A DNA stretch of 64,000 nucleotides from Phallusia mammillata (lineage: Eukaryota), in NCBI GenBank assembly GCA_965637545.1, contig OZ281501.1, positions 15,190,001 through 15,254,000 on the forward strand, in the 5' to 3' direction. A program made the position numbers and the translations under genes. Positions 1,320 to 62,600 of the stretch are shown here, one piece after another. Numbering within the stretch: the first letter of the stretch is position 1; each line of letters begins with the position of its first letter. Under the pieces are notes generated by a model. The model saw nothing but the letters and a program-made list of their open reading frames with translations. It was not told the origin of the DNA and did no database searches.

Positions 1320-16054
<14,735 letters not shown>

Positions 16055-16791
16055 CGTCACCACGTGACACGTCACTGCTTGCTGCCCCCCTGTGCACCCC
16101 CTGTTTGTTATAGTCTTGCCACACCTACAAATGGTTGCTGCGTGTTGCGTGCTAACACAGTATGACTTTGAAGTCTTCTTTTCTTTATTGATCTGTTTTT
16201 GTGATTTGCTTGTTTGTTTTCTGATATTTTTTCCTTCCGTAGACTTGCTGTTGGTGGTACTTCCATTGTTCTAAATACTCCAGACGTGTTAACGCGCATC
16301 TTTGTTCCTAACATTCCAAGTGTTTTATCACCGTAAAAAGTTAAAATAGGAGTCAGTACAATTTGTCGAAAACCTTTTCGATTCTTACATTTCATCTAGT
16401 ATATTTGCAACTGGGCTCGCAATGACATTTTTTAGTTGAAAAGAAAACACATGAACCCAAATCTTTAGATTTTCGAACTACATGTTGCCTGGAGGTTTAC
16501 ACACTGCCATGCGTTTGAACATAACATAAGACTAAAAGGGTGACTGCCCCTTTCTTGTATAAACGAGGTTTTGCTATTGTAGTGTAATTGTATTTTCGAA
16601 CTGTTTGTAGCAGTGGTGTGTAGGTAAGTCGATAAAAATCAGCGTCTGTAACTGGCTTATGTACTTTGAAACGGAAATATGGTCTAGGCCAACTTAAAAA
16701 ACGCTATGTCTTCGAATATAAAAGTTAAAAGTTGTAAGTTTGTATGTTTCGAAACTCGAGGTTTCACGATAGATATATTACAACACATCAC

Positions 16792-16797
16792 AATAAA
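16792..16797 (+). terminator. Candidate polyadenylation signal of the MLCK transcript
   Basis: AATAAA about 740 nt after the MLCK stop. The motif is common in AT-rich DNA, so support is weak. Confidence 0.3.
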
Positions 16798-17597
16798 CGT
16801 TACTGTCTGCAATTTAGTTACCTGTCAAATATTGCTATAAAAAAACGTTTGATTCCGCTCTTACTAAAGTTTCGAAAACGTTTAAGATCTACAGGGCAAG
16901 AACCAGTAGTTGCCTTATTGCGTTGATTTCAACCTGCGTGTCTTGAATGAGTGTATACGTTTAAATTCTATATTACCGCTGTTAATTCGCTTTTGAATCC
17001 TATTTCTCCACCCGTTGTCGACTAAAAATGCTGTGATTCACATTTTACTTGGGCTGAACTAAGGTCCCTTGATTTTTGGTACTTTGCGACTAAAATTGAA
17101 AACGATTTGTCACGCTTTGCACCTTTTAAATATTATCAAGCATATTGCGTCACTTACATTGGTGCAAAATCAGTCGCACAAGATTTTTCCGCTTTACTTT
17201 GTGCTCACATCACTACTACTCCCAATAGTTTCTCAAGCCCCTGATGTGCACCCATGCCGTGATCCTAGTAGAGAATGTTCTCGTCACAATTAATTTGCCA
17301 TATCCACTCCGAAATTAGCAACCTGTAGTCATAACACTAAACTAAACTACTCGAAAATGATGTTTTTGTTGAAAAACTTGTTGAAGTCGTTGTACTGTGA
17401 GGTCATGGTTATCCCTTGGCCCATCAACATTTCATGACCTTTGCCCTTATTATAATGGTTAACGAATAGATAGTGTCCAAAACATCCTAAGATGGTTTCG
17501 AAAAGTACTCAATCATAGATACAGCCATATGTCAGCTAAATAATTAACTACCCCATAGAATTTGCAAATCTTAATTTGGTGAATTCCAGCAAACCGA

Positions 17598-17604
17598 ATG
17601 ACAG
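17598..17604 (+). CDS. Candidate ATG micro-exon (MT) for the obscurin-like gene
   Basis: ATG ACA G|GTATGA is a good phase-1 donor that fits the acceptor at 18158. No other start exon was evident between the two genes. Confidence 0.35.
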
Positions 17605-18157
17605 GTATGAAATATCTGGAGTATAAACTTGTGCCATAGAATTGACAACATTGCTTACAGTTTGTTAATGTTTGTGTCGCAATGCTTCAAACGCCATGAT
17701 TGCCATACTATTCATCAATAACTCTATAATCACCGTGAAAAATTAGTTGATCTCTATTGTGTGACCTTATTGCAAGATGAACCTTTTGTTTTGCCACTGA
17801 CGACGTGTTTGTTCTCTTCGCTTTCTTCCTCTCTTGTTGGGTTAACCCTCAACACAAGTTGATTTTGTCGTGGCGCTAATAAATCTGTTGATTAAATAGA
17901 TTCAACGATTTGTAATGTGTTAGAAAAAAAGTATGCCAATTCTGGCATATTATGCTCTGACTTTTGTGGAATAAATTCGACAAAATAACTAAGTCAGAAG
18001 GCAGGACTTCAAAACAGTCGCTGGTACTTTAGGCTTAATGCACAAGTACGCATCTCCTGTAAAAATCGTGTGATGTATCGTTGCTGCATGAAAATAGTTG
18101 CTTAGTTTGTGCATTTTTACTTTTTCCAAGATTTTCAACTGTCTTTTCCTGTTTTAG

Positions 18158-21100
18158 CAAAACGAACTTCATCAACCAGCTCTAGCTCTTCATCTTCTTC
18201 TCCTATTCCTTACTCTCCATCTCCTCTCTTATCCTCCTCTTTCTCCTCACTTGAAAATCTATCTTGTCAAGACGACATAGTGTCCGAATGCTTCAAACCG
18301 GGAGAACCAGTTTTTCTTAATTTTGAGTTTTTTGCTCCTGTATCACAAAAAGATTTAAACAACGCCATTCAGGAAGATGCTTCCATTGATTGGTATAAAA
18401 GCCCTTTAGAGGAGAATGCAAACCAGGATTTAAAGGAAGCTGAGCCTATTTCTTCTGACAACAACTGTACTATCAAGTGTTTTTCTCCTACTGAAGATCG
18501 GGAAAAAATTGCTTCCAGCATTTTGGTTCTTCATTCGCTGTCGCAGGAACAGAGTGGCATTTATTTGTGCAAATGCGTTGTCAGAGGTCTCAAGGCAACT
18601 AAAAAGTATCGTGTTGTCATTGCGGATGGTAAGAAAATTATGGATGAAATCTATTGTTGAATTAAGTACTGTTTTTGTTGTAACCAAAGCTATCATGTCC
18701 TAAATTAAAAAGTTAACATAGAAATCATATTGTTCGTGCACTTTGATTTCTGTTGTTAAGAAATTGGCGCCATAAAAACATCCTTTTGAATTTGGTGCGT
18801 ATGAATTGAGAATGTGATAACTGTAACATACCTTTTGGTGGTAGGGAATAGGGATCCGACGCAGCTGCAAATAATACTATGAAAGGAAATTTTGTCATTG
18901 CAGAAACCAACAATACCAGCAAAGATTTGTCTTATACGCAAAATTTGACAAGATCTATGGCGCCCAATAGTTTTTCACACTAGTAAATTAAGTCACATTA
19001 GTAAATCACTTTTTTTTAGATACAATTGTACACAAAAAGACTAGGTGTCTTCCACCAAGGTTTGTAAAGATTTCAAGAAACCAAACAGTCTCAGAGGGTA
19101 GTGATGCAGTGCTAAAGTGTACTGTAGTCGGAAAACCAGCACCTTTGATTTATTGGTACATGTATGGTACAAAGCTCTACCAAGGAGAACGACACAGGTA
19201 AATTAATAATTTTTTTTAGCATATAATTTTAAAAAGTTGCTGATATAGTTTCATCAAAAGATAGACGAAATACCAGATAATCAGCGGCTAAAAAGTAATC
19301 ATACACCAAATCAGCTAAATTAGATGGTTTCAAATTTGTACTATTTGGCACAATTTCAGTTATTGTGCTGTTTTGTTTTGTACTTTGAGGTTGTGTGAAA
19401 ACAATTATTCAACCAAACCTAGTTCTTGTAAAATTAACATATTCTAAGTTTCGCTGTATCACTACTGAAAAGTGGAAACAGTTAGTTAATTTTATAACCC
19501 CAGCTGGTCTTGTAAACCTACGTTTTTGTGTTGGTTATGTTAATTACAGTTTCATGCAGTTATAATCAATACAGTGTGATGCTAGATAGGTTTGTGTACA
19601 AATACATTTGTGTGATGAAATGATGGAAAAAAACACTGAATTGTTTTCATTGTAGGTTTGCTAGAGAAGGTACTGATGGAACATTGTCTGTGTTGGCAAC
19701 AAGGTGGTATGACAGGTAATGCATTCTAACTGGTATAATCTATTTTATACATAACTAGTTTATTCCGTATGCAAATGCACAGTGAAGCCTTCCAAAGAGT
19801 CTCCAGTTATGGATATTTACTGATAAGATGTTTTGTAAGTGTTGTTCATTTACAGTGCAAAGTATGAATGCAAAGCAGTCAGTCCACTTGGTACAGCTAC
19901 TTGTTGTGTTGATCTCTGTGTTCAACCTGCTGACCACCAAGAAGTTGAATTTGAAGGAGCTCCAATGTTTCTCATGCGAACTGAATCAAAAATTGTTCAA
20001 GTTGGGTCCAATGTCACATTTAATTGCACTGTTGCTGGGACACCAAATCCCAAAGTGAGTACTTTATGTGCTTCTACATGTTTTGCAGAACTATAGCATG
20101 TCACATTTAATTAACAGTTTGACATGCTGTGGTGGTGTTTAAAGAATAAAAAATCATGTAGAAATGGAAACATTTTTATTTTTGCTACCTTGTTTTGTTT
20201 GTCTGTTTAGGTTGATTGGAAAAAGGGTGATCATGTGATTTCTGCTAGAGAATCTTCCCGTTACATTTTGACTCAGAGTCAGGGTGGTGCATACAGCTTA
20301 ACTATTAAAAAGGTCCGACTAATTGACGATGGGAAATACACTTGTGTAGCTGAGAATGCCAGAGGTGTTGCATTGTGTGGAACATTTCTGATGGTGGAAA
20401 GAGGTAGGGCGGCATTAATTTGGCTTCTTCGTGCTCACAAAAATATCTAAACATTTAAATACTTAATGATTCGATACAGCATTTTTAGGTATGCTTGTGT
20501 CGGTATACAGATCCTGGTTCTGACCATATAATAGATCACCTCTATTATTTTGAACATACAGTAGTGCACTTTCGTGTACTTGACCTTCATTTTAAAATTT
20601 TGTAGGCATGTTGGTAAAACTGGCTAAAAATTTTATCTGTTTTTTGGAAAAAAATCTGCTCTTTTACAGGAGACGAATCCCAGCCATTCTGTTCATATGA
20701 TGTTCTTCCTCTTGCCCCAGTGTTTGTCACTCGTCCATACAGTGCCACTGTTAGGTGTGGATACTCAGCAGCATTTCAATGCACTGTTCATGGAGTCCCA
20801 CAACCTAAACTTACTTGGCATCTCTGCAATGGTGCAAGGATTAAAACCAATGGACATTACATGGTAGTTCAATGTTTGGACTTTTTACCTGTTTTCTCAT
20901 AAATTATGGCGGTGTTTGTTATAAATACAAGTTTCATTTCCCAAAAAGCATTTGTAAACTTTGCATGACATTTTTGTAGCAATATAAAAACTTCTAAAAC
21001 TCATAAAAACAACATTTCTAAGCTTTGTTACTTGCTTTTCAGGTTGAAGATTTGAAATCACACCACACTCTAAGAATTCCAAAAACAAAACAAACTGATC

Positions 21101-45100: not shown

Positions 45101-48100
45101 AGTACTGCAACATAATACAAAACATTTGCAATACCAATTTTATTTTTATTTTGGTTAGGTCTGAAAACCTTACTCAGTGTACTCTGGTACTCGATAACGT
45201 AACGCTACTCGACTCTGGCCTCTACTCCTGTCAAGCAAGTAACTCGCACGGACAGAGTTCGTGCTCTGCTGTCGTCCAAGTCCACGATGAAAGTGATGAC
45301 GTAGTTTTTACGTCAGACAACGTCACAAACGATCAGGTTTTTATAACATCGCCAAAAATATTTCGAAAATAACTGCAAATTCATGCAACGAAATATTTTC
45401 TTAAGATATCGGATGACGTCATATCAGGTGATGTCACTCCAACCGGTGTACTGGGTGACGTATACACGAGTGATGATGACGTTTCAATTTCAATGCCGCC
45501 GCCTAGTGAAAGAAGCTGTTCTTTTCAAGCACATTTTTGCAAACTTGATGAGACGAAAAGCATTTATTCGGAACGTGGTGTGCAGGCCGTTGTGGATAAT
45601 GCCGACAAAATGAGCATGGCTTCTGGTAGTTTAAGTTTTCCAATTGTAAACTATTTTTCCTTTTTTTCAAATATAACAATAACAAAAAAAGGCAGAAGAT
45701 TAATAAACATAAAACGTTAAACTTTTGACGTTGAAACACATTTAGAATAAAGACTAAACAAACTGCGACTGTACACCAACTGCAAATTAAAAAGTCATGC
45801 AAGTTGCCACATTGACAAACTCAGCCATGTGTGAAACTCATTCACGCACAAATAAAACTATAACAACAGAATTCAGTTGGGGACAAAATTGATGTTGAAA
45901 CAAATTCTTTAAAAATCCGAAATGAAAAGAAATGATCTACAAATAACGTCCTACCTAACCTCCTCTACATAACTTCTGAAAGAGTCTTTTTGTTTTGCAG
46001 TATTGGCATACTGATGGTGATTAAATGCTAGAACCTCAAGCTAAGCTTGTCCACTAAAAGTTTTAGTACTTGTCATGTTTTGTGTTAAGAAATATTGGAA
46101 AAAACTGATAAAATTTAACAATGAAAATAACGGCCCAAACAAAAGAAGTCACATGCTTTATTGAATGGATCCGTACATAGTGTTCTCAATGAAAAACGAT
46201 AATTACTTCATCTATGCTTTCCAGCTTCTACCAAACCACTCAAGATTCATGTCCTTGAAAGTATCGTTGTCCGAGAGACCTTCGAGTCAACTGAGAGCTG
46301 CAGTTGCACAGACAGTGAGTCGGATTCCTCGAGCAACTCGCCTGTTCGAAGACGGCAAAAAACATCTGCTCCTCAATACCATGAAGTAGCTGTAAAGCGA
46401 TTTTCAAGACCAGTTACTTCCTGTTTGTCCGATTCGGAATCGGATGATGAAAGTTACCGTTCGTCGGTAGTTAAAGTAAGACTTTTTCGGCGTTTTTATT
46501 TAGGATTTAGTACACAATATTAAAACAGAATTGAACGTTTGACGATTTCGGTAAATTATCGTTTCGTTTCATTGCAAACTGAACATCAATCTTCAGACCA
46601 GCAGTGATTTTCAACCGGTTTTCCGTGAAAGATCGTCAGGTGTTCCGCAAGAAATATGTTGGTTTAATTAGTATTCCATAGAAGCAATGGGCATAAATTG
46701 CTTTTCTTTTTTGTGAAAATGATTGCCTGCTATCACCAGTTTGAATGTTCCATTTTGATTTGCAACATTTATCGCTGTGTAATAGTAAGACTCATGAAAC
46801 AATAATAATGTAATTGGGTGGGCCTATTGCTGCTTAAGTACAGTACAATACAGTAGTTGAGTGAGAGCTTGTTTACTTTATAGCATCTTTATATTTCGTT
46901 TGGTGCTCCACAAGGTTATTTTAATGCATAAAGGTGTTCCGTGGCCCCCAAACGATAAAAAACACTGCTGTAGTCAACAGTTGGGAATTTATTTTTAGTT
47001 TACTGCGAGGTTGATACGTATATGCTATTATCCAGCGCAACACACTATATAACTAAATGTTGTAGAAGAGACTAATTCTGTTTAAGTTGTGGTACTTTGT
47101 TATCTGACCAACATCTTACAATGATTTCAAATAAAATCTAATTGGCGTCTAATTTTTTGTTTAACATATCTTGATTCAAAATCGATCTCAAGATATTGTT
47201 ACAAAAGGTTACGGAGTGTATTCTGTTGACAAAACATTTTGTGAATATGAGATACTATCAAAATAAAAACCCTTTAAATCTTCGTTCCTCTAGACCCCGG
47301 AAGTGTATTATGCTGTAAGAGGTTATGGCGCTTCCGGTCGTGACAGCGCCACCTTGCAGCTAACTAGTGGCCAAGCTGTTGAAGTGATGGATGTCAGTTG
47401 CAGTAAGGAGTGGTTGGTGAGAACGAAGCCCAACAAGCATAATCCAGTACGGTAAGCTATGTATGTAAAAATTGACAAGTTCCGAGAAACATTGTTGACG
47501 CCAGGCAAGGAGCACATGCAATTTATCATTACTATTTTTTTCTGTGTACTATTGAAAGTGAAAAATAACAGGGCATATTATATGTGTATAATACAATGGT
47601 AAACACAAAGCTTCCGACAGTTTGTGCTACTGTCAAGGTAATAACCTGCATAGGTGTTTTTCATTTGGAACACATTGGATTTTTCCAGTTTTTCGAAATT
47701 TAAGAACAGTACACAGTGCATACTCTTCGTCAAACTTTACATTTTCAAAAAAACATTACTTTAGGATGGGGTTTGTGGACCCCGCATTTCTCGCCCCACA
47801 TCACTTTACCCCCTCACCAGCCCCACCTCGGGTGCTGGAAGAATCCTTTCCGTCAGCCACTAGGACGACTGAGTTCCTCACGGGGCGCGAAACATCCGGA
47901 TTGGTCGAGGACAAATTTCAATTCCCCAATTACGTCGACGAGTTTGATCACGTGATCGCTAGTGAAGATGAACTTATGTCGGCTTGTTCAAACCCTAGTA
48001 AACGGTAGCTCCCAATGTTTTGCATAACTATAATAATATTGTTGATAATACTGATTTTTGTTTTAGTTAAATTCCATCGCAGAAACAGTCTAATTTCTTC

Positions 48101-51100
48101 ATTTTGAGTAATTAGAAATAACAGTTTGAACAAAGTTATTTAGAACTCAGCAAGAACTTGTCTTTTACTACGCTTGTCCGTTTTATACTTATATATTCAA
48201 CATTACAGAAACCACGTGGTTAATCTAATTCAAGAGGAAAAGCACTTCATTGTTTGCTTACGTAAAGCTATACACGTGATCAAAACCTGTCCAATCATAT
48301 CAGCGCCTGTGGAAAGCCACGCCCAGCAGCTTTTCGGAGATCTAGAGGGATTGGAACATTTTCATACAACGTAAATTGTAGTAACTAATACAAGTAAACT
48401 GTGTGTGTTATTAGTACACTGGTTTAGAAATGTATAAAACAGTTAAAATAGAAGGGATGTGGGCGTGTGTATGTATGTGTATGTGTTTTCTACTAGCACA
48501 AAATGCAATAAATTTTGGATATTCGCACATAATTTGACAATCATTGCGATTAACCGGAATATCTGATGCAATTTACTGAAATCGTGTGAAATTAATTAGA
48601 CATGTCTCCTATCCTCAAGCAATAAAAAGGCTTTGTTTCTGTATCTTTTTTAGTGAAATCCTTCCCGATTTGGCGTCAATCCAAACTCAACCTCATCTAC
48701 TTCCTCACGTTTTTTTAAAACACCACGAAACATTTGAGGTAACTATACAACTGGACAACTATACAACTGGACAAAAACTATTTTTTTGTTTTAATATGTT
48801 TTCAAGTAGATGTAAGGTAGCTTATCGTAGTTCCCTCCTACAGTTCAGTGTGGAGTTTCCTTGGATTTGAAACATCTGCATTAGAGTGTATTTACCTTCT
48901 ACTAGCTCTTTGGTATTTTTGCTGTTTTAGTTCATGTTTAATGGTTCGAGGCTTTCTAATTGTCCCCTTGTACTGAAAAAAGTAGCTGTTGATAAAGCAT
49001 TTCAAAAGCAATACTACGATGTTTATGGTACAACTGCAGCAAAAAGTGAACCTCCGTATTTTCACAGCAACTTCACTTGTCTTACGTCATGAATACAAGT
49101 GATGCGTCATCGTTAGTTCAGGATGACGAAACAATAGCTGACGGTTTGTCAGAATTGTCGCTACAGACAGGAGTGTCGATGATGGAAATCCCGCAAACAA
49201 CTCTGCAACATTTGGTGCTTTACCAGTATTATCTAAAGGTACGGTATCAAAAAAGTAAAATTTTATTGACAAAAACTAAACCATAAAAAAACTAGTATGG
49301 GTAAACACAAAGAATATCGGTTGCCACATTTTTCATTCCTTTCGTTTGAAACCGTATCAAATTGACTGTGCAATTGACGTGGTTTTTGTTGCATATTAAA
49401 TATCTCTAAATTTGCATGCTATTGCCTGGAAGTTTACCGTTGGATTTTGTTTGAGCAAAAAAATGCCTTTACATTTGACACATACAATGCTCTCACCTCC
49501 TTTTTAAGGAAATTTTTGTCTCTATACGGTGTCAAAGGTATTCAAAAATATGCTGTTTTCAAAACATTCCAAAACTTACTGTGATTAAGGTATCTGATCA
49601 TACCAGTGTGTTTTCTCTTTCTAATAGATGTTTTCAAACAACTTGGTTTGCTCTTAGAAATTGTTGCATTATGAAGACACGCCGCAGACCATCGTTCGAC
49701 CAATCAGGGACGCCGTTCAGCTTTTATCTGATATTCCCAACAAGGCGAGAACAACTAAGTTATGGTCGCAGATGAGGGGAAGACCCAAGCAATCTGACTT
49801 GCTAGGAAAGTTGATTAAAGAAGGTAGGCAGAAAAAATTTCATTTGTTAGCTGTGTTTATTGCCAAGGTTGCAACAACCTAAAAATGTACCAAATGTAAA
49901 ACTAATTATTAGAAGTTACTAAGGACGTTAAGAACCAGTTCAACTACTTGGTGTTGTCAATAACGTTTTATTCTTGGCGTTTTAGTTTTATACCATCTTA
50001 TACATTTTAACTTAAGCTTAACCGATACTGTTGATCAAATATCTCTCCATATTTTCTGTGAAATTTATACCTCATTTATTTTTTGGGGGATTAATAACTC
50101 AAATATATTACTTGTTGCGTACATAAAAAAATAATCAAAATAATAAAATAGGTATATAGACAACAGTAGATTACTATACGAACACAATACAATCTATTGC
50201 TAAATGTAAGTGACAAATACTTAAATTTGTCAAATTTATCTCTTAAAATGTTCCTGTACACTGTAAATTACTTACAAAGCTTGCTCACATTTAAACCTGG
50301 GTGGCCTTGTGCTACAAAGGTGTCAAAATAATTTTTCCTCCGTATAAACGTTCGTTAATGATAACAGTATGTAGTTAAATCTATTGTTATGTGCCGTAAG
50401 TCGGTCCCAAACGCACAATAACCTTTTCACACACCGAAAAACTTCAGGTGTCGTTGGAACGTCCAACCCTGATGACGTCAGAAAAAGTGGGCGCTGGCGA
50501 TTTCGTCGCGTGCTTTTATTCGAGAATTGCCTGGTAATCGCTAAACTCCACTCCGTCACATCGAGATCGTATTCCGACGGTTCCGATTTCGAGCAGATAC
50601 TACAGGTAAAGTTGTTTGTTAAATACAAAGGTGCAACACAGCCCCTACGGACCAAAATAATCCCTTATAGACACGCTTTAAATTTAAGAGTTAGCGAAAA
50701 AAATGAAATGTTTGCTTTAAACATGACTGCAGCGGGAGCACACTAGCGTAACAGCACCGGTTTAACTGGTTTGCAGTTGTCACTTTGAACCATTATCGTA
50801 ACATCCTTTTGGTACCTGATCGAAGTAAAGTTTAGGGTACTGTTTGTTGGAAGTTTTTAAGTTACTGAAGGAATGAGATCATTTCTCATTCACAAGATGA
50901 TCCGTTTACTTGCATGACAATTGTAAATCAAAGATTATCGGAAGATTTTAATCCGATTAATTGCATAAAAACTGAAAAATGGATTTTCGATAAACCGGAT
51001 TTTTTTCATCTCTAAATACTTTAACGCAGACTGACAGCATGATAATAGAATCGGATGATACCAACTTACAATCTCGAGTTATGATTCTCACATCGACCGA

Positions 51101-52505
51101 GTCTGGCCTCGGAGTGGCGCTGTGGCGTCTTGCGCTTAAGACAAAAACCGAAGCATCGAAGAAATTATGGATTCGACAACTCCAAAAGGCGATTCACTAC
51201 ACAATAAGACCATCCTTATCAGGTTTGACTGCTTTTTGTATTTTGCAGTTGCCCAATAAACACAGTTTAAATCCCTCCATCCGTTGACCAGAAGCCACTT
51301 GGTTAGTCTTTGATAAACCAGGTTTGTCGGTAAACTACGAATAATTTCATGCTAAAGAAAGAATTAGAGAGCATGCGTAGGGGTTTAGGGAACGAAAAAA
51401 GCTAAATTTGCGGAAAACATTTCCGCCTAAAAAACGGGTATTCGTTCGACTTCCTTATATCCCCAAAATAACAGGCGAACGTCACCGCATGCTGACGGAC
51501 TTCGGCGTTAATGTAGATGTTAAACTATTCCAAGACTTCAGTTATTGCGACATCCTAAAGACCAAGAGAGGTGGTCTATTTTCTACCGTGTGCTGGTTGC
51601 AACATAGTGTATGTAGGAGAGACGGTTTTGGTCATGTTGCTCAACACGCGACTGAAAGAACATCGACAAGATATAGCGAACGAGGATTCAAAGAAATCGG
51701 TCTCGGCTAACCAAGCTACTGTGCAGCACAACATCAATTTTGCTATTGCTGTAGTGATTGCCTGAGAAACTTCTCACAAGAAACGAGGGTTCATGGAAAA
51801 CTTACTTTCGCGCTAACAAGAAACTAATCTTTGAAGCTGATTAGCTTTTGATCCTTTTTGCACCTATATCTATAGTTCTTATAAAAGTTTATTATTGTGT
51901 GTATGTCACCTTTTGTGTGTTATTACCCTGTTTATAAGTGATGAGAACGACTGTTTTCGGTAGTGCTCTATTACCCTAATGTAGACGCTTCGAAAAGACG
52001 TGGAAACGTCGGTTAAGTAATTCACAATTGCCGGTTAATCTGGCGAAAATATATGCTTAATGAGCAATTTGCACTTTCAGTGCATTTAATATTCCATCAA
52101 AATTTCTACCAGTGCCTCTTTTGTATTTACTTCTTTTTCTTTCTTTAGCGTCGCCGCGTTTTTCTCTTCCCATCAGTGATGTCACAGTCAATGAAGGCGG
52201 TGACGTGACGTTATTTTGTTACGTCACAAACAAGCCGGACACTGGAGTTGTTTGGAGCAAAGGTGGAAAAGTAAAAATACGAAAATCCAAGCAACCGATG
52301 CAATTACATTTTAATTGCAGGTGACCAAGTTGTCATGGAAACCGATATTTGCGTGAAGTCAGTGGAGCGCGACGACGGGTATTGTGCCCTGTATTTACGT
52401 CACGTGACTGTCGATGACGCCGGTGTCTACCGATGTATGACGGCGAGCGGGGGCTTGAGTGAGATTTCTTCCTGTGCCGAAGTTACTGTGACAACGATGG
52501 AGTAG
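18158..52505 (+). CDS. OBSCN: Obscurin-like giant Ig/FN3 RhoGEF protein (about 25 Ig, 2 FN3, SH3, DH, PH, Ig); 65 exons, about 4000 aa
   Basis: Exons: 18158-18628, 19020-19197, 19656-19715, 19856-20054, 20211-20403, 20670-20863, 21043-21136, 21279-21552, 22081-22217, 22531-22711, 22964-23079, 23533-23729, 23840-23963, 24294-24433, 24669-24807, 25148-25283, 25733-25872, 26313-26431, 26987-27104, 27503-27710, 28019-28157, 28257-28466, 28720-28852, 29012-29161, 29466-29600, 29913-30064, 30253-30370, 30638-30751, 31093-31248, 31567-31711, 32658-32785, 33030-33154, 33538-33697, 33767-33909, 34239-34457, 34527-34669, 35095-35275, 35490-35594, 35677-35820, 36402-36597, 37073-37289, 37609-37857, 38250-38397, 38924-39072, 39469-39649, 40024-40961, 41368-41514, 41785-42659, 43348-43391, 43690-43838, 44682-44797, 44920-45022, 45159-45336, 45406-45625, 46225-46475, 47294-47451, 47765-48004, 48209-48370, 48654-48738, 49068-49238, 49658-49823, 50448-50605, 51030-51222, 52149-52262, 52321-52505. 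The sum is 12011 nt, which with one upstream base gives 4004 codons in one frame. The domain order and the SH3 motif WLVRTKP are obscurin-like. Confidence 0.88.
21730..21830 (+). mobile_element. Degenerate tRNA-derived SINE body (resembles Ciona Cics-type SINEs from memory)
   Basis: A B-box remnant GGTTTTAATCC is followed by GTGTTTCCCTGAGCAAGAAACTT...CATTGCTCCAACCCAGTGG. The family name is recalled, not searched. Confidence 0.5.
26614..26793. mobile_element. hAT MITE, 180 bp
   Basis: TIRs CAGTGTTTTTTTAAGGT / ACCTTAAAAAAAACCTG, with a perfect 8-bp TSD TTGCTAAA (26606-26613 and 26794-26801). Confidence 0.8.
31951..32212. mobile_element. hAT-like MITE, degenerate
   Basis: CAGTGGTTCT... / ...TGAGAACCCTTG termini with internal GGACCAC repeats. 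The TSD is not preserved. Confidence 0.5.
37393..37540 (+). mobile_element. tRNA-derived SINE or tRNA pseudogene
   Basis: 37393-37466 folds tRNA-like, with A box TAGCACAGTTGGTAGAGC, perfect T arm GTGGG-TTCGAAT-CCCAC and partial acceptor stem GCCTGTA/CGCAGGT. The anticodon arm is disrupted. Confidence 0.65.
41004..41165. mobile_element. Tc1/mariner (pogo/Tigger-like) MITE, 162 bp
   Basis: TIRs CAGTGAACCTCGGTTAA / TTAACCGAGGTTTACTG (16 of 17 match), flanked by a TA duplication. Confidence 0.85.
42885..43210. mobile_element. Probable hAT-like MITE
   Basis: TAGTGATGCACCGAA at the left end and TTCGGCCGAA...CATCACAA at the right end, with subterminal CCGAA/TTCGG repeats. No clear TSD. Confidence 0.45.
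44200..44450 (-). mobile_element. Short Penelope-related non-autonomous element with a 32-bp inverted repeat
   Basis: 44200-44231 (CAAGTCTATGGAGCTCTTCTGGCAAACGTATT) and 44393-44424 are inverted repeats with one mismatch and flank the hammerhead motif. The same tail sequence follows the copy at about 7175-7240. Confidence 0.6.
44233..44285 (-). ncRNA. Minimal type I hammerhead ribozyme motif (Penelope-type) with intact core
   Basis: The minus strand reads UUAUUUACC-CUGAUGA-A-GACGACC-UGUAUA-GGACGUC-GAAA-C-GUC-GGAAUAA. This gives the full core, a 6-of-7-bp stem II, a bulged stem I, a loopless palindromic stem III (ACGU) and a GUC cleavage triplet. Confidence 0.7.
46602..46967. mobile_element. 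Probable hAT-like MITE
   Basis: CAGTGATTTTCAACC / CGATAAAAAACACTG imperfect TIRs. No TSD match. Confidence 0.45.
47294..51222 (+). other. SH3-DH-PH RhoGEF module of the obscurin-like protein
   Basis: SH3: YYAVRGY...GQAVEVMD...WLVRTKP...MGFVDPAFL. DH: HVVNLIQEEKHFIVCL...LFGDLEGLEHFH...LYQYYLKKLL. PH: LGKLIKEG...FRRVLLFENCLVIAK...KKLWIRQLQKAI. Confidence 0.8.
51400..52030 (+). mobile_element. Decayed Penelope-like retroelement 3' fragment (GIY-YIG endonuclease plus degenerate hammerhead)
   Basis: LPYIPKITGE, then after a frameshift VVYFLPCAGCNIVYVGET...RLKEH, a premature stop, then KRGFME. A hammerhead remnant CUAAUGU-A-GACG...ACGU-G-GAAACGUC lies at 51976-52010. Confidence 0.8.
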
Positions 52506-53694: not shown

Positions 53695-56600
53695 ATGAAA
53701 ATCTTGTTTGTGCTTCTAGCAGGATTTCTCTTGCTTCAATTTGGTAAGTGCTGACACATTTTATCACATGTTTCTATTTTATCTGTAGTCAAACATTTAA
53801 ACTAAGTCTTTTGAAAGCATTGAACTGCTTGACACTTCTGTTTGACGAATATTTTTGGTTTTGCAATTTTACTGTGTATGTCGTTAGATAGTAGAGTGGT
53901 TGCCGCCACCAGTTTGCAGTACGACTGGTGGTTGTCTCGCCACTGATTTATGATTTTTTCCCTCGGCTTCGACCAAATTCAATGGTCAGAACTGAGTCAT
54001 AGTTTCAAGTACTAAACCAAATACCGGAAATCAATGCTACAAATTTGATTTTGCAGTTGATTCACAAATATGCCCAAGATTTATGGGCCTGGTTGAAAAG
54101 GGCAGAAGATGCCGAAAACCTTGTCAAACGGACGCAGATTGTAGGGGCGCTCTAAAAAGATGCCGTTGTGATGACGATTGTGGCATGTCGTGCTTTAATC
54201 CAAGTATGTAACGATACTACTTAATTTTGACGCTTTAGATTTGGAAAGTTTGGCTCAATAAGTTTTTGGTTGCCATAACCCTCCTATGTAACAAGACACT
54301 CTCACTTTGCTGCAAAATATGTTATTGCTGTCTGCAAGTAAGCTCTAATAAGAAACAACAGTACGTTATTTTATAGTAGGTATCATAATAATTTAATAAA
54401 TGTTGATCCAAAGTACAGAAAATGCAAAGCAGGACCCTTGAAAAAACCAAACCAACTTTTGTTGTTTGTAGAATTTAGCTTGTTAATTCGGGGAGATTTG
54501 TGTGGCAGAAAGGTCCAATTACCTTCTATGCCGCTTTTTCAAACACAGAGGCAGAATGTCCACCTCTGGAAGGGATACCCGATGGAAGAGTTATCTACCG
54601 GGGAAGAATAAGAAAATACAAATCTCGAGCTCAATATGTTTGCAACCAGGGCTATATTTTAAGAGGTGAAGCTTTTCGGACATGTCGCAGCGACAAGAAA
54701 TGGTCGGGCACCGTTCCACAATGCACAAGTAAGTACTCGAAGCCAGCAACATGCATGTTTGTTGTGATATGACCATTATAAGTGTTTCGGTTTAATTAAA
54801 ACAAGTTGCAAAAATAGTGGTGTTGATTGTGTCTGTCATAATGGTTAAAAACCTAAATCATGTTTGTGAATATTTTTTGAGATAATATTTTTCTGAGTGT
54901 CAAAACTATCCCAGTCAGAAATTGAAGACGTAATTTTTACGCCAGTTACGTCAATCCTGTGAAAACCATTAGAACAGTGGTTCTTAACCGGGGTTCGATC
55001 GAACCCCAGGGGTTCGACAACTCCGAATCAGGGGTTCGACGAAGGTCTTTTTGAAGTACAATACAAATACTCGTTTTTGTCAAACTTTAGGGTCTATTGT
55101 CGCTAAAAACGGCAATTTGTGTTTGCTCAATATCAAAACACTGGAAGGTTAACTTAGGTAGGTGTGTTTTAAACTGCACTAAACAGTATTTGTGGTACTA
55201 AAAATAGTATTACCAGCCTAATACCCGTATGTGTCAATCTTTTTGTACGCATATTGTGTGCCAACAATGCGAAAAAATAGGTACCACAAGCACCACAATA
55301 TAGATTATGACATCATAAACACTTAAGACTGATCTCCTCGTTGTGCAGCTCAATCTGTGCACCGAGCTAAAAATTAAAGTGGGCTTTTGGGCGCTATTAG
55401 ATGGTAAATACATCATATAAACGATCATATAAAGTATTTTAAAACAATAATAAGCAGGTAAATGGCGGCAGTTGGTGAAATAAGAATCTGCGATGCGGCC
55501 GTCCTAGCAAAATGGTCGTGCACCCCTGCACTAAGATTTTGATTTCTTTTATTTACCACCATCCGTTACATTAGCATAGCATCGCATAGTTCAATCAGTC
55601 AAACTGTATAACATAACCGTAAAATAACAACATAAAATTCAAATAATAATTGTAAGCTGCTCTGACGATAATTGCACTTTCTATCAAGAAGCGATGAGAT
55701 TTGAACCTTTGTCGACGAATGCATGTGTGTCTTTATTTTTTATGTTTGCATATAGACGTAGGCCCAATGAACTGTGTAATCGATAAATTTGCCCCTATTA
55801 CTTAGAAAAGATTGATATGATAAATACTCCCAGGTCAATAAATTATCAATCAGGTAAAATAGGTAGGCCTACATGGTTTATGCGAATTATTTTGTGCTGG
55901 TGACCGCTGTTTTGTTTATTATTTAGTCGTTGTCATTGACAAATATACTTACTATTCTTATGCCGTGTTGCTTCAACAGCTTCCAACTTTTGCGACTCCC
56001 TTCCGTGTTTAAACGGAGCAACATGCCACGCAGATGGAAGATGTCAATGCAGAGAAGGATTTTATGGCACTCGATGTGAAAATGGTAAAATATTATGCAA
56101 AACTGTCATTTGGATTTTACACTTTCCTGGGCAGTAAAGTAGAAAATTTGTCAATTTGATTTTCAGTTTACAGGTGTCCGCCATTATCAGATCTCAATAA
56201 CGGTAATATTCAATACATTGGGTTGAGGTCCTCGCATCGCGAATATGGATCACGCGTTGCAGTAAATTGCAATGCCGGATTTGAACCAAGCAGGAATGTA
56301 GTACTCACTTGTCTTGGTATGGGACAGTGGTCTGGCGAGTTACCAAGTTGCACAGGTAAGTGATTGGTATACATTCAATTTGCCTACTGTGATCATTTAT
56401 ACTACTTTGGGTATTTTTTAAGCACAGCTTTTTACAATTTGTTATGTTTTTGTCAGTTGGCCTGTGTGGCGATGTATTAAAAACGAGGCACTTTTCTTAA
56501 AAAAGTAAAATACTTTGTGTACAATAAAAAAAAACATTTGTTTAAAAATTAATTGTTAACCACAAATGCGGTGCATACATGAATGTTCAGCCTGGAAGGA

Positions 56601-59600
56601 GTTTAACTATTATCAGAGGTTTAAGGCTTAGATATGTTACACAAAGGCCTGGCGACCTGCCAGTCCAGTTTAATAATATCTCTTAGGTTTGTTCTGACTT
56701 TTCCACGACCTACAACTTTATAGTTTAGCCAGTGACGTAGTTGTAAAATACCCTTAAAGTGTGTTCAATATGTTGCAGTCCAACGATGCAACGAGCTGAG
56801 GAAACTACCCAACGGGCGTATTGACTATCAAGGAACACTTTCAGAAAGACTTAATGTCGGACAACGCGCAAATGTTATCTGCAATCCCGGTTATCAAACA
56901 GATACTGAGGAGTTGATTTGTGAATCTGGTGGATGGTCGCCTTCTTCATCACCAACTTGTAACCGTAAGTTAATTCCTCTGTATTGTGTACTTTTTGGTT
57001 TATTATCTCAACTATGGTGGTCGTCGCTTGTTATTCTAAAGAGGAAATGTACTTCTTAACTTTTGTATAGTAGTCTTTTGATTTCAAACGGCTATGAACG
57101 GTTGCGTAACAATAATTTTATAAAAAACTGTTTAACCTGGTAGTATTGTTTTTATTTGTAACGTGGCAATCTAACTTTAAAACTTTAGTCGAATCGGGAT
57201 ATTTAGTTTAAGAGGGAAATAATTTTGGCCAAAATTGGCACAGTACTGTTTACAAAAAAACTATTTTAAGGGATGCGATTAAAATATTGATAAGGTATAT
57301 CAATGGGGCGCGACATGTCGCAAAAATTAAACTTCAAAAATATTTGGGTGGCGTCAAAAAAGTTTCAGAACGACTGATCTATAACTTAACTAACTACCCC
57401 ACTTTTCCCCATACTGGACTTAGTTAAAAATTAACTTAATTAAATAAAAAATGTAGTTTTTGTACAATGTGTCATTGTGTTATTGCGTTTTTTCTTGTAT
57501 TCTTACTTGTTATCCCACTTGTCCCCAATAAAAGCTAGGTCTTCATACAACGTCCTATTATAGAACGTCCTACTAAAATAGAAAGATTGTAAATACTAAA
57601 GTAGACTATTTATCGCCATGTTTGACCTTAGAACACAAAACTTCATGATGGCTATCTCTGAAAATGCATTTTTCGCAACTTTGCATGTGTGGACACCCAT
57701 GAGTTTCTGTTTGCAGACACAAACAAGGGTATAAAAATACGTTGGCTAAAATAAGACCCAATTAGGGATGGGCCGAGTCGAGCTAGAAGTCCTCGGTACC
57801 GAGCATCGCTGCTTTTAATGCTCTGTGTCGGCCGAGCAGTTGCACAAACTGACTCGAGCATAATATTTGCACATTCATGTCCATGTATACGAAACTAGTG
57901 TGCGAAAGGGTATCGAAGATCAAAAATCACTGCCGAGCATTAACGAGAGATGCTCGGCGGTCGACCAAACAGCTCGAACATTTGCGGTTTTGACACTTCC
58001 CTAGACCCAATATAAAATAACTGTAGCGAATATGTAAACTTTTTATAATATGCCATAGCACAGGCACATAGCCACCTTTATATATTTTAATCCTACCCTT
58101 TTTTCAATGCAATATTTCCAACTTTGTAATTATTAGTACTCAAATATATCATTGGATACATTCCAGTGTTGTATTGCAAATCGTGCCCACTGTACACATT
58201 TGTGCTAATAACACTATTCCTTTTTTCTGAAGTCTCCCCGTATAAGTCTTCTTGTTCTCCGCAAAAATGCGCACGGGTCGAAATGACACAGACCGACAAA
58301 TCAGGTCATAGCGGTTACGATTCAATCAGCCTCGCGCATCAAAAATTTCAAAAACGCATCTACATTCCACTGAGAGCCACGCATTCCACACGTAAATGTG
58401 TGACATATAGTTTAACGTTCAGATTTAGACTGAAGATTTGTGATATTAGTGCCATTCTCAGGATCATATTCAAGTCCCTAATATTTACTTTGGACGGATC
58501 TTGTGTAATGAGTAAAGGAAACACATAATTTTACAAATAAACAACATTTGTAAACAACACGTATTTCAATACTGGCTGCAAATTTTTCAAATTTGGTGGA
58601 TTATGATGTTGTGGCCTTAGATTCAAATAACTGAAATGTAACTTATTTTGACAATCACTACCTTTTTAATGGGAAAATTGTATTTCATGTTTTGCAGTTT
58701 ACCGATGCAATAAGCTGAGGAATCCAAGCAATGGGCGTATCGTTTATCAAGGGACACTTTTAGGAAGATTAAATATCGGACAGCGCGCTCATGTCCGCTG
58801 CAATCCCGGTTATCAAACAGATACTGAGGTGCTGATTTGCGACCCTAGCGGATGGTCGCCTTCTTCATCACCAACTTGTAACCGTAAGTAACCGTAAAAT
58901 ATTTATTTAAAGACAGGACGTAAAAAAAACTCTCAGCAAGTTAAAAGATAGACATCGACCGTTCACGGGTTTGGTAATCATGCGAAAGAGTAAAAACGAA
59001 CAAAAACAACTTTTCAAATCATTTTCAGATTCTGTCAGATTTAACTTTAACGTTCAGTTTTTCGCTAGCTCTTCCGTGCTTCTTTCAAGTCTCAAAAATA
59101 AAGGAGGGTGTTGCTGTTCGCGGTTACGACAGAAAATCATTACCGGAAACGTTTCCGAGCGGAAGCACTATCACAATGGAGGTAACATGTACTGTTATTA
59201 CTGTTTTATTCTTTATCTAGCCATTGTTCAGTCTAAAAAACTTGACAACATTTTTGGCTTGCGCTCTATTCTATATTTTCGAGGCATAAATATCGTTAGA
59301 AAATGATTCTTGCAAAACGTACTCCCATTTAGTATGTTTCGCTTATTTTGAGAACGATTTGAAACAATTTGACGCACGCAGATCTATAAGAGATTGAGAA
59401 CAAAGAACAAAATACTTTAATAACAAATGAAACGTCACAGGCATTTTAAAACCAACAATAAAGATCATTTGTTGGTCCACGGTTGTTTATTTTGTGGTAC
59501 AACAAATAAAATTAGATAGACAGCAAAAAAGACGAGATTTGGAGTCTGTAGCCTGATACGACTATATAAAGAACCGAGATTAAACAAAAATAAAATATCA

Positions 59601-62600
59601 AAACAAATATTTTGGAAATACCACAAAAGAGAAATGTTAGTTGATATAGCTTTAACTTTGTTTAATGTATCTACATCTCAGTTGGGATGTGTTACCTCTT
59701 ATGTTCTTAGCTTAATACACGGACTCATTTTAAAATAAATAGTTATTACTGGGATAAGATACTCTCAGGGTGTTAATGCAAACGATGTATTTTATGTTAA
59801 TATTTTTGTCAATGTTTACTGGCTTTCAATTTGCAGTGCGCCAATTCCACGCATGACTTTTTTGGTGAAAATCAACTAAACTGCGTGAGAGGATTATGGG
59901 ACCACGACCCTGGAAATTCATCTTGTCACGCCCCCTGCACACCTCTACAAACTCCAGCCAATGGACGCTTCGAATTTCTGGATTACGCAAGTAATAGCAT
60001 CAATAGATGGAAATGGGGTTCACGAATCAAACTGTTCTGTAATCCCGGCTACAAACCAAGCAATCGAAGCGATATTGTATGTCAGGACGGATGGTCAAGT
60101 GAAGCCACTTGTGAAGGTACACTGCATGGTTGTTAGTAATGCAAGAATGATACATTTTGTCATTTATGAAAACTAACCAAGAAGTAAGAAGTGGTGTATA
60201 TGTTATAATTTTTTTTAAGTGAAGCTGCCTATAGATACGTCCCAATATTCTTATGTTGTTGATTTAGCAATTGAAAGTGAATACCGTAACCTTACAAGCA
60301 GTTGATATTTAAAAAAAAACAGTTTTTGATAAAATAACAAACTTTGGACCAATTCTATTTTTTGTGCGTGTATGCGGAAAAGTGAATCAAATTGCATGTT
60401 TTCGAACCGCTTTACAGTTTTACATTAGTTTCATTTTAATTGTTTTTAGCAAGACCATGTCTTTTGTACGGAAGTGACCTTCCTGTGGGAATAAATTTTG
60501 TTGGATTTGAACTTGAATATTATGATGAAAGAGAATTTGAAGTTGGTGCATCGGTGCAACTTGAGGTATGATCAACACCTTTTTCTGTCAACAATAAATC
60601 TGATGATAAAAACCGACTAATTGAGTGTGAAAGAAAAGATTGAAGATGGAGAATTATGCCCCTCAAAGGCATTTAGGCTTTTTGACTTTTAAGCATAGAA
60701 AACCTAAATACTGAAATGCGGTTGGATGTTGCATTATTTATAGTCAAACAAGAAGAGTAGAAGAATAAAATACGATTATTAATTCGGTAATATAATCGAT
60801 TACAATGCAAGCAAATTTTTGCAATAATTAATTAAAATTGCACATAATAATCCTTTTCAAAACTACGTTTTTTTCTATTAGGACTTTAAGCTCAGTAAAA
60901 TGCAAAAAAAACTCGAAAGCTTTTTTTTCAAATGTTTACAGTGCGACGATCAATCAGAAGAACTTGCAGAGAAGTTTGACAGAACAATCACGTGTTTACC
61001 CGGAATGTTTTGGACAGCTGATTTCTCAAATTACTACTGTGTTGCTTCGCAAAATGGTAATCATATCAGCAACATACTTTTAAAAATAATTGGTGGTGCC
61101 CTTTCCTGAAAGCGTTGGAGGGGTTGTTAACAGCCGGTGCTAAAAAAAAACGTTGGTGAAATGTTTAAACATTTACCGATTGGGACGAAATTTATTACAT
61201 TACATTATTGTAAAGCATTGATTGTAACATTGTCAACCTGCACCGTTTACCCCCACTCACCCCTAAATTGTGTAAAATTTGTAAACAATGTTTGATTTGG
61301 ATGAAGCCGAGACAGTTTCTGAAGACTTCACTACTTAAGGCCCTTGATTGAGTGTTTCACCCACAACCACACCATTTACAGGACCTGCCCTTCACAAACT
61401 TTAAACTATGTATTAAATAACATTAAAATAGTTTGTATTTCATATAGCATGAATATTTACGAGCAATATCGATCTCTGTGTTTGACCCTGCAGCACCAAA
61501 CTTATAGTTACTTCCTTTTCTGAAGGGGACATCAATTGTTTAATCTGTATTTTTATTAGTTAGTAAGTTGATCCTCCTACTGTTTGACTCTGGATTACCG
61601 AGATATTTATCCACACGCAACCCAAATGTGATTTTTGTTTGCTTATAATATACTTACTGAACTACATGAACCATGAGTTTCACACCGTACTGTAGATGAT
61701 GCATTGTAAAAGACTTTAATTGGTGTTTAGGTTTACCTGTCCTTTAGGTCAGAAATACAAGACCCAATGTGCTGAAGTTTTAAACAGGTGTTTGAAGGGT
61801 GTTATTTGTTTGTCATTTAAAAGTTTTTCCTGGTCGGCCCAGTGGCTACCTTTACAGCCAATAATATGTGTACACTGGAAAGTCAACACTGCCCTACATC
61901 AACTGTGGCGGTTTAATGTATGAGAGGAGCTACTCTGCTTCACGCATGAACAGACGTGTAACTTTGATTTTTTGGTTATTAGAAATCAACTAGTTTTGCA
62001 CCACAATACCTTTGACTGAACATGTGCATTTTTAGTTTTGGTGGTAAGGGTTTCATATCTTACTAATACCCTATTGTTCTGTTGAGTTGTTGACTCGTTA
62101 AGCAATAGCTATAGATTGCGTCTGACAAAACGCTGTTAATAAACATAAAGATCAAGAGATGAACTTAATGTCTCTAAAAACACGTTAAAGTGGTCAATAA
62201 ACGGTCGTTATCGCACGACGTGGTGTTGCTTTCGATCAACTTACAGGGGTCGCAAAAAAAAAAGGATTTGGAGCATTTTTTTCTTTTGTTACTTAAACTG
62301 TATGTTGGAAACCATTCAAATTTACATGCAAAAACAATCATGTTAGTTGGTACAATGGTATATATAGTAAACCGTCAAACAGGATATAGAGTATAAAAAT
62401 GGAAATATATAGAAAAGCCACCTTTTATAGTTTGCAAATTTGCATAAATTTTGGGCTTCAAAAATAATTTAAAATAAAGGGTATAAAAAGCGTTGTTTGC
62501 ATGGAGATCAATATAAATTAAATTAGTCTCGCAAACTGCTTCACAAATTAAATGTTGGTTCAATTACTGCATTTGTGCTGCAACGAGACTAATTTTTTAA

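Follow-up and report, generated by a model that had tools for sequence, protein, structure and literature searches.

A MYLK-type kinase gene and an obscurin-like gene of Phallusia mammillata probably form one transcription unit with a choice of two 3' ends

The locus analysed here is a 64,000-nucleotide (nt) stretch of the Phallusia mammillata genome (assembly GCA_965637545.1, contig OZ281501.1, positions 15,190,001 to 15,254,000; the whole stretch is called the window, and its first letter is position 1). It consists of AT-rich, intron-rich animal DNA in which a gene for a myosin light chain kinase (MLCK) of the MYLK type is followed, on the same strand, by an obscurin-like gene. The initial annotation of this DNA had proposed that the two might be one transcription unit, spliced from a cryptic donor close to the MLCK stop codon to the first obscurin exon. 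We found this junction in RNA contigs from three studies, next to a form that reads through the donor, and consider it likely that the kinase and obscurin-like genes constitute a single transcription unit whose 3' end can take either of two forms, the choice being made at a composite terminal exon.

The identity of the two parts was assessed by domain searches run exon by exon, with the spliced model never joined. Open frames resembling immunoglobulin (Ig) and FN3 domains are visible at ~5.0-7.0 kb, upstream of the kinase. The best solved matches of the kinase exons 10796-11059 and 12961-13167 were MYLK4 (2X4F; 54.3 and 54.7 bits, respectively) and twitchin (59.8 and 52.0 bits), compared with 31 bits for the obscurin kinase (8AK2) and ~30 for titin. 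Directly after the kinase, the frame 14201-14335 ends in RRKWQ and the motif continues in the frame 14646-14855, a segment that we take to be the smooth-muscle MLCK calmodulin-binding site. I-set matches extend over 15276-15440 and 15907-16046, and telokin (1FHG and 1TLK) gave the top single-domain solved matches, with 61.8 and 60.5 bits for the first of these exons. Judged by these matches, the upstream gene is a MYLK orthologue and not an obscurin-type kinase. Accordingly, the earlier suggestion of an inverted architecture holds insofar as a MYLK kinase stands N-terminal to obscurin, and fails insofar as it implied that obscurin's own kinases had moved to the front (31 versus 54-60 bits, together with the telokin Ig).

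The downstream gene is recognizable chiefly by its SH3 exon, for which the human obscurin SH3 domain (1V1C) was the top solved match (E = 2.5e-6; runner-up, 0.009) and Pfam SH3_10 scored 0.031, and by I-set matches at 40024, 45070, 52064 and 52275. The presumed PH domain, placed in 48144-51284, has weak matches only (PF00169, 0.072; SOS1_NGEF_PH, 0.19), and the presumed DH domain had no Pfam match in the exon-by-exon search, with DH-like motifs being read in the frames only. No C-terminal kinases were found in the obscurin-like gene: a stop codon at 52503-05 follows an Ig domain, and a WAP/Sushi gene begins at ~53996.

At the boundary between the two genes, positions 16040-16054 of the forward strand read ATG CCA G/GT GTA TGA (slashes mark exon borders; ATG 16040-42, CCA 16043-45, GTA 16049-51, TGA 16052-54), which bears out the annotated end of the last MLCK exon at 16043-16054. 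The donor GT sits within the third-last MLCK codon, 6 nt ahead of the TGA, and the exon end is at 16046. On the other side, a long pyrimidine tract (18120-18157) closes in AG to give the acceptor ...cttttcctgttttag/CA and the exon start at 18158; this exon ends GAT G/GTAAGA at 18628. Both 16046 and 18158 are in phase 1, the split codon G+CA encodes Ala, and a frame check of 18160-18627 found no stop codons. The obscurin-side frame is closed upstream by a TAG at 18103-05, such that it cannot extend 5' of 18105, and there is no in-frame ATG between 18106 and 18628; the exon 18158-18628 therefore needs an upstream coding partner in phase 1. In the 240 Mb assembly, the MLCK exon and the 18158-18628 exon each occur once, and no paralogous copy of either was found. 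No Rfam families were found in 15000-19500.

RNA evidence came from contigs of k = 31 assembly graphs representing four runs (X1, X2, X17 and X9) that mapped to 15000-20900. The runs belong to four studies and were taken from about 20 available for one organism, and the public record labels them as RNA only by guess. X1, X2 and X17 show seven GT..AG junctions in total, six besides 16046 to 18158, and are therefore cDNA, whereas X9 is a thin run with pieces of the distal 3' untranslated region (3'UTR) and one obscurin junction only. In each of the three richer runs, three contigs have the 30-mer 16017-16046 in common, which is the signature of a true branch in a k = 31 graph. Contig A follows the MLCK exons (...14827/15276-15440/15907-16046; the letters ahead of 15276 map to 14798-14827) and stops exactly at 16046. 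Contig B continues unspliced from 16017 through the TGA to 17905 in X1, 17876 in X2 and 17843 in X17. Contig C, which is 3.4 kb long in X17 and reaches 12.4 kb in both X1 and X2, joins 16017-16046 to 18158-18628, skipping 2111 nt, and carries on through 19020-19197, 19656-19715, 19856-20054, 20211-20403 and 20670-20865, after which the contig maps to 21045. Judged exon by exon, with the split codons included, every confirmed junction between 15276 and 20865 keeps an open frame. The phase-1 splice predicted by the initial annotation is seen at its exact borders in RNA from three studies. Contig C is unbranched at the acceptor 18158 in X1, X2 and X17, and no other upstream partner of 18158, be it another exon, a spliced leader or an unspliced intron-exon form, is retained in these runs. 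With the MLCK exon as the only retained partner, and an exon that lacks an in-frame ATG, both the proposal of a single transcription unit and the remark that the first obscurin exon starts at an acceptor without an obvious start exon are supported. We also looked for the opposite arrangement, in which all MLCK transcripts would end before 18158 and obscurin would start from its own site near 17.5 kb, and found the long junction present and no junction leaving 17598-17604. Two candidate starts for obscurin were set aside. The 7-nt start exon ATGACAG (17598-17604) is rejected for these samples, given that no run has a junction from 17604 and an X9 contig reads through it, and spliced-leader trans-splicing at 18158 is not supported, there being no loose end at this position in the mapped runs.

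It is very improbable that the junction is an assembly or reverse-transcription artefact, such as a template switch or a de Bruijn path made chimeric by a repeated 30-mer. Thirty exact letters of a single-copy exon, joined at canonical splice sites, go far beyond what chance would give. The stretch shared by the contigs is indeed only k-1 = 30 letters long, and the runs are RNA by a guessed label; nevertheless, the same junction recurs at exact GT..AG borders in three studies, and a repeat-induced chimera is excluded because both flanks are single copy. Moreover, a contiguous contig over 16046/18158 means that reads exist for every junction-spanning 31-mer, and six further canonical introns are spliced out in these contigs.

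The unspliced contig B represents the second outcome. An AATAAA is located at 17878-17883, ~22 nt before the end of contig B in X1, and none of the four runs covers 17955-18151; contig B is therefore not intron retention but a 3'UTR, ending at a poly(A) site some 250 nt short of the acceptor. In X1, the five letters past 17905, 22 nt after the AATAAA, do not match the genome and may start a poly(A) tail. The 3'UTR of the short isoform (16055-17905, ~1.85 kb) lies wholly within the intron of the long isoform. The donor GTGTAT at 16046 is the weakest of the seven RNA-confirmed donors and the sole one lacking both A at +4 and G at +5, which fits partial use. Since the same exon is internal when the donor is used and terminal when it is read through, in each of X1, X2 and X17, the 15907-16046 exon is a composite terminal exon with a weak donor and an intronic poly(A) site. 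The I-set profile is matched through its final column three residues ahead of the junction; the telokin-like Ig is thus whole in both forms, and only the final two residues (GV) are swapped.

The sequence around the MLCK stop codon has a further peculiarity. The stop falls inside TGACGTCA(C), a palindrome resembling a cAMP response element (16052-16084 region), and is followed on its 3' side by CACGTG at 16062-16067 and then by two more copies of the ACGTCAC core (16070-16076 and 16078-16084). TGACGTCAC also overlaps the MLCK stop in the distant assembly ERZ22157276 (L007:13616-13624). The motif may have arisen by chance, or it may act in cis where splicing and polyadenylation are decided and be conserved for that role.

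The two outcomes suggest a switch. When the donor at 16046 is not used, translation would stop 6 nt further on (...TVIMPGV-stop), and the read-through RNA would be cleaved ~22 nt after the AATAAA to give a short mRNA for a smooth-muscle-type MLCK with a 1.85-kb 3'UTR. When the donor is used before the poly(A) site acts, the 2111-nt intron, including the whole of that 3'UTR, would be removed, and the intact telokin-like Ig would be joined in frame (...TVIMP-A-KRTSS...) to the obscurin part, with its Ig array, SH3, presumed DH-PH and last Ig. Splicing would in this way lengthen the message by ~12.4 kb of obscurin, a part for which neither a first exon nor a start codon of its own appears to exist at the acceptor 18158. 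The donor and the poly(A) site would be in competition. The long mRNA is expected to start at the MYLK promoters, to carry the kinase and to be translated.

The depths of the contigs, a crude measure, bear on how the flow of transcripts is divided and on whether the kinase travels with obscurin. For contigs A, B and C, respectively, they are 58.9, 18.4 and 41.0 in X1; 52.6, 32.3 and 39.1 in X2; and 40.9, 27.6 and 17.7 in X17. Contig A is thus roughly as deep as B and C together, and, by this crude measure, ~40-70% of the RNAs that pass the telokin exon proceed to obscurin. The donor at 16046 is heavily used and does not deserve the term cryptic given to it in the initial annotation. The balance of depths argues that the obscurin-bound RNAs carry the kinase exons; otherwise, mean depth of contig A would be about half of that seen in X1. 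Furthermore, contig A is unbranched upstream of 15276 for 1062 nt in X1 and 1786 nt in X2 and X17, a length that would span the whole kinase domain when exon-sized frames are summed.

These observations are relevant to an alternative in which a telokin-like promoter inside MYLK drives the long RNA, such that obscurin borrows only the last Ig (telokin) exons and the protein is devoid of the kinase. Vertebrate MYLK has an intronic telokin promoter, which provides a precedent; contigs give no phase between exons that lie far apart, transcription starting within an exon would leave no branch in the graph, and in X2 the sum of B and C (71.4) exceeds A (52.6). We nonetheless regard an internal promoter as unlikely. 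No alternative first exon is retained along the unbranched part of contig A, the depth of A is close to the sum of B and C in X1 (58.9 versus 59.4) and X17 (40.9 versus 45.3), and confinement of the kinase to B-type RNAs would bring the mean depth of A down to ~27 in X1 and ~30 in X17.

Alternatively, leaky termination might produce read-through of two independent genes, with the chimera being untranslated or degraded and obscurin using its own start in tissues that were not sampled. Animals commonly produce conjoined transcripts, the evidence covers no more than four runs from unspecified tissues, and the donor is not kept in ERZ22157276. Yet the spliced and read-through contigs have about the same depth, and the junction is the sole retained partner of 18158 in three studies, with no junction from 17604 and no loose end at the acceptor. 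The exon 18158-18628, devoid of an ATG, cannot start a protein, and the junction, three residues beyond the end of an intact Ig domain, maintains the reading frame across six or more further exons. Fortuitous read-through has a still smaller chance of being correct than the internal promoter.

With no relative of the first obscurin exon detected, conservation was examined at the genome level only, by using the large upstream Rab-binding exon as a query and then walking along two distant assemblies. In ERZ25067590 (L002/L003), the MLCK gene ends ...GGC TCA G/GT CTG TGA (TCAG/GTCTGTGA), with CAG/GT again 6 nt before the stop codon, and I-set exons follow on the same strand from ~5.8 kb downstream of that stop. 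A word search with the telokin-exon frame yielded no match, and in a close relative (L005, 81% identity) the contig stops at the first kinase exon. Two further features lie downstream of the MLCK genes in the distant assemblies. ERZ25067590 contains an uninterrupted open reading frame of 2994 aa on the same strand, ~12.5 kb past the MLCK stop and after the I-set exons (L003:1-162, minus strand, and beyond), which has no Pfam match on record and may represent either a mobile element or a very large exon coding for disordered protein. ERZ22157276 contains a reverse-transcriptase-like frame (...GVPQGFVLGPVF...; L007:16149-16664), probably a retroelement fragment.

Several points weigh against joining the two genes into one transcription unit. 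In ERZ22157276 (L007), the MLCK gene ends ...GCG G/GC CTG TGA, with no GT, showing that the donor is not universally kept, and the 6.6 kb available past the MLCK gene showed no Ig exon. Donor conservation, which had been put forward as a check, thus appears mixed as judged from two distant genomes, being kept in one and replaced by G/GC in the other. Within the obscurin contig, only 30 nt belong to the MLCK exon, and short-read contigs cannot phase the kinase with obscurin; for the same reason, the product of 5738 aa, which includes the Rab-binding start, stays a prediction. Contig depth is a poor measure, contigs drop rare variants, and a minor or tissue-specific obscurin promoter, or a spliced-leader form at 18158, may exist. 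The exon 18158-18628 has no detectable relatives: 18160-18627 matched no Pfam family, gave no word-search match and had no counterpart among 1.84 billion representatives. Because of this and of a pLDDT of 53 for the single-sequence AlphaFold model of its fold, we do not call it an Ig domain. Finally, the support consists of RNA contigs from unspecified tissues and stages plus an open frame, from which the protein level is extrapolated. Direct support exists for the junction itself, for its open frame, and for a read-through form that occurs side by side with the spliced one in each of the three richer samples.

The coordinates of the features are collected in Table 1.

Table 1. Features of the MYLK and obscurin-like genes in the window
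Feature	Position	Strand	Evidence
MYLK-type kinase domain and calmodulin-binding segment (~7 exons, last ending 14827)	10835..14827	+	open frames, solved-structure matches, contig A
Penultimate MLCK exon, N-terminal half of telokin-like Ig	15276..15440	+	RNA junction 15440 to 15907; I-set E 2.5e-12; 1FHG 61.8 bits
Shared part of composite exon, C-terminal half of telokin-like Ig	15907..16046	+	ends at donor CAG/GTGTAT; contig A
Read-through tail of short isoform: rest of Gly, Val, TGA	16047..16054	+	contig B unspliced
3'UTR of short MLCK isoform	16055..17905	+	contig B
GT..AG intron of 2111 nt, removed in long form	16047..18157	+	three runs
First obscurin-side exon: Ser-rich linker, then diverged ~110 aa	18158..18628	+	RNA, open frame, no in-frame ATG
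Next RNA-confirmed obscurin exons (19020-19197, 19656-19715, 19856-20054, 20211-20403, 20670-20865)	19020..20865	+	junctions, open frame
Following obscurin exon	starts near 21045	+	contig C continuation mapped
SH3 exon of obscurin-like gene	47294..47452	+	solved-structure and Pfam matches
Presumed DH and PH exons	48144..51284	+	weak PH matches; DH motifs read only
Last Ig and stop codon of obscurin-like gene	52064..52505	+	I-set matches; stop 52503-05

Among the obscurin exons, 19656-19715 is a micro-exon of 60 nt with RNA junctions in three runs. The neighbour of the obscurin-like gene, ~1.5 kb past its stop codon, is a separate plus-strand gene (53996-60133) encoding a WAP domain and several Sushi domains. 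A second MLCK-family gene is present on the minus strand of the same contig, at ~14,043,000-14,057,200, 1.13 Mb away. It encodes, in this order, a kinase with a calmodulin-binding-like helix, two Ig domains, a diverged kinase, a linker rich in S, T and P, an Ig and an FN3 domain. Its first kinase matched MYLK4 best (80 bits versus 49 for obscurin), while the second, with HLKLKPEN and with DFS in place of DFG, is too diverged to place. This gene was considered as a possible seat of the kinases missing from obscurin, and it may or may not correspond to SPEG or to the obscurin kinases.

Literature searches on obscurin in ascidians, tunicates or Ciona, or in combination with myosin light chain kinase, found no description of a MYLK-obscurin junction; an unpublished annotation may show a fused model. 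The accessible part of PMC12198301 assigns MYLK, OBSCN, TTN and TRIO/KALRN to a single chromosome of the chordate ancestor, reports that in Ciona the Ci-MYLK gene shares its chromosome with titin, and describes both splits within the family (OBSL1 and SPEG) and unions (SESTD1-CCDC141-TTN, 'connectitin'); that part of the source reports no MYLK-obscurin joint transcript. Obscurin, SPEG, UNC-89, titin and MLCK belong to one family, and what chiefly sets its members apart is the way in which they combine kinase, Ig array and RhoGEF. The origin of these combinations is a standing question (PMC12198301).

If the two genes of Phallusia are indeed one unit, a true MYLK would, in this chordate, be spliced onto obscurin with the kinase in front and of MYLK rather than obscurin type, two family members living as one gene. 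Both a MYLK model that stops at the TGA and an obscurin model that begins at 18158 would then be incomplete. Such an arrangement would raise the questions of whether function depends on tethering MLCK to the scaffold of the sarcomere and sarcoplasmic reticulum, of whether the telokin Ig serves as a linker, and of how the ratio of the products is set by a weak donor 6 nt ahead of a stop codon. A more far-reaching scenario, which we put forward tentatively and hold at somewhat less than even odds, is that obscurin in this ascidian lineage has lost its own start and its C-terminal kinases and is made only as a 3' extension of MYLK. The result would be a giant of ~5000-6000 residues, in which a Ca2+/calmodulin-regulated myosin light chain kinase is fused via the telokin Ig to the obscurin Ig array and RhoGEF, with the splice/polyadenylation switch setting the ratio of free to tethered kinase.

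Several known systems resemble this arrangement in part. Vertebrate obscurin-B ('obscurin-MLCK') and SPEG and the UNC-89 of nematodes and flies unite, in one giant Ig/FN3 polypeptide, an SH3-DH-PH RhoGEF cassette and a kinase of the MLCK family, a combination to which the long form in Phallusia, with its presumed DH-PH, would be similar; their loci also yield shorter kinase-only or kinase-less isoforms. However, their two obscurin-type kinases lie C-terminal to the Ig/RhoGEF part, whereas Phallusia has a single, N-terminal, calmodulin-regulated kinase of the MYLK type and an obscurin part that ends after an Ig domain, resembling the kinase-less obscurin-A in its lack of C-terminal kinases. In Drosophila, the single Stretchin-Mlck locus gives rise, through alternative promoters and poly(A) sites, to a giant protein rich in Ig domains, to an MLCK on its own and to forms that join the two; there, the Ig-rich part is 5' and MLCK 3', the reverse of the order in Phallusia, and Stretchin is without a RhoGEF cassette. 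The anatomy of the composite exon fits the choice between secreted and membrane immunoglobulin mu, in which a weak 5' splice site in a terminal exon competes with an intronic poly(A) site and switches the C-terminus. In Phallusia, where such competition is presumed, the choice would add ~4000 residues of an otherwise separate gene family rather than a short tail. The vertebrate MYLK locus, with long MLCK, short MLCK and telokin as nested products, shares the order Ig-FN3-kinase-calmodulin site-Ig and the telokin-like last Ig; it ends after telokin, with OBSCN on another chromosome, whereas in Phallusia the telokin Ig becomes internal to the long form. The neighbour of vertebrate MYLK is KALRN, in the opposite direction, and not obscurin, according to the accessible part of PMC12198301. 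The same part of that source provides, in OBSL1 with SPEG and in 'connectitin', likenesses in which members of the titin/obscurin/MYLK family on one ancestral chromosome were split or joined. Taken together, the evidence supports regarding the union of MYLK with obscurin as a new arrangement within a known kind, that of giant muscle proteins which combine Ig domains, kinase and RhoGEF and come in nested isoforms, together with a 3' switch at a composite exon.

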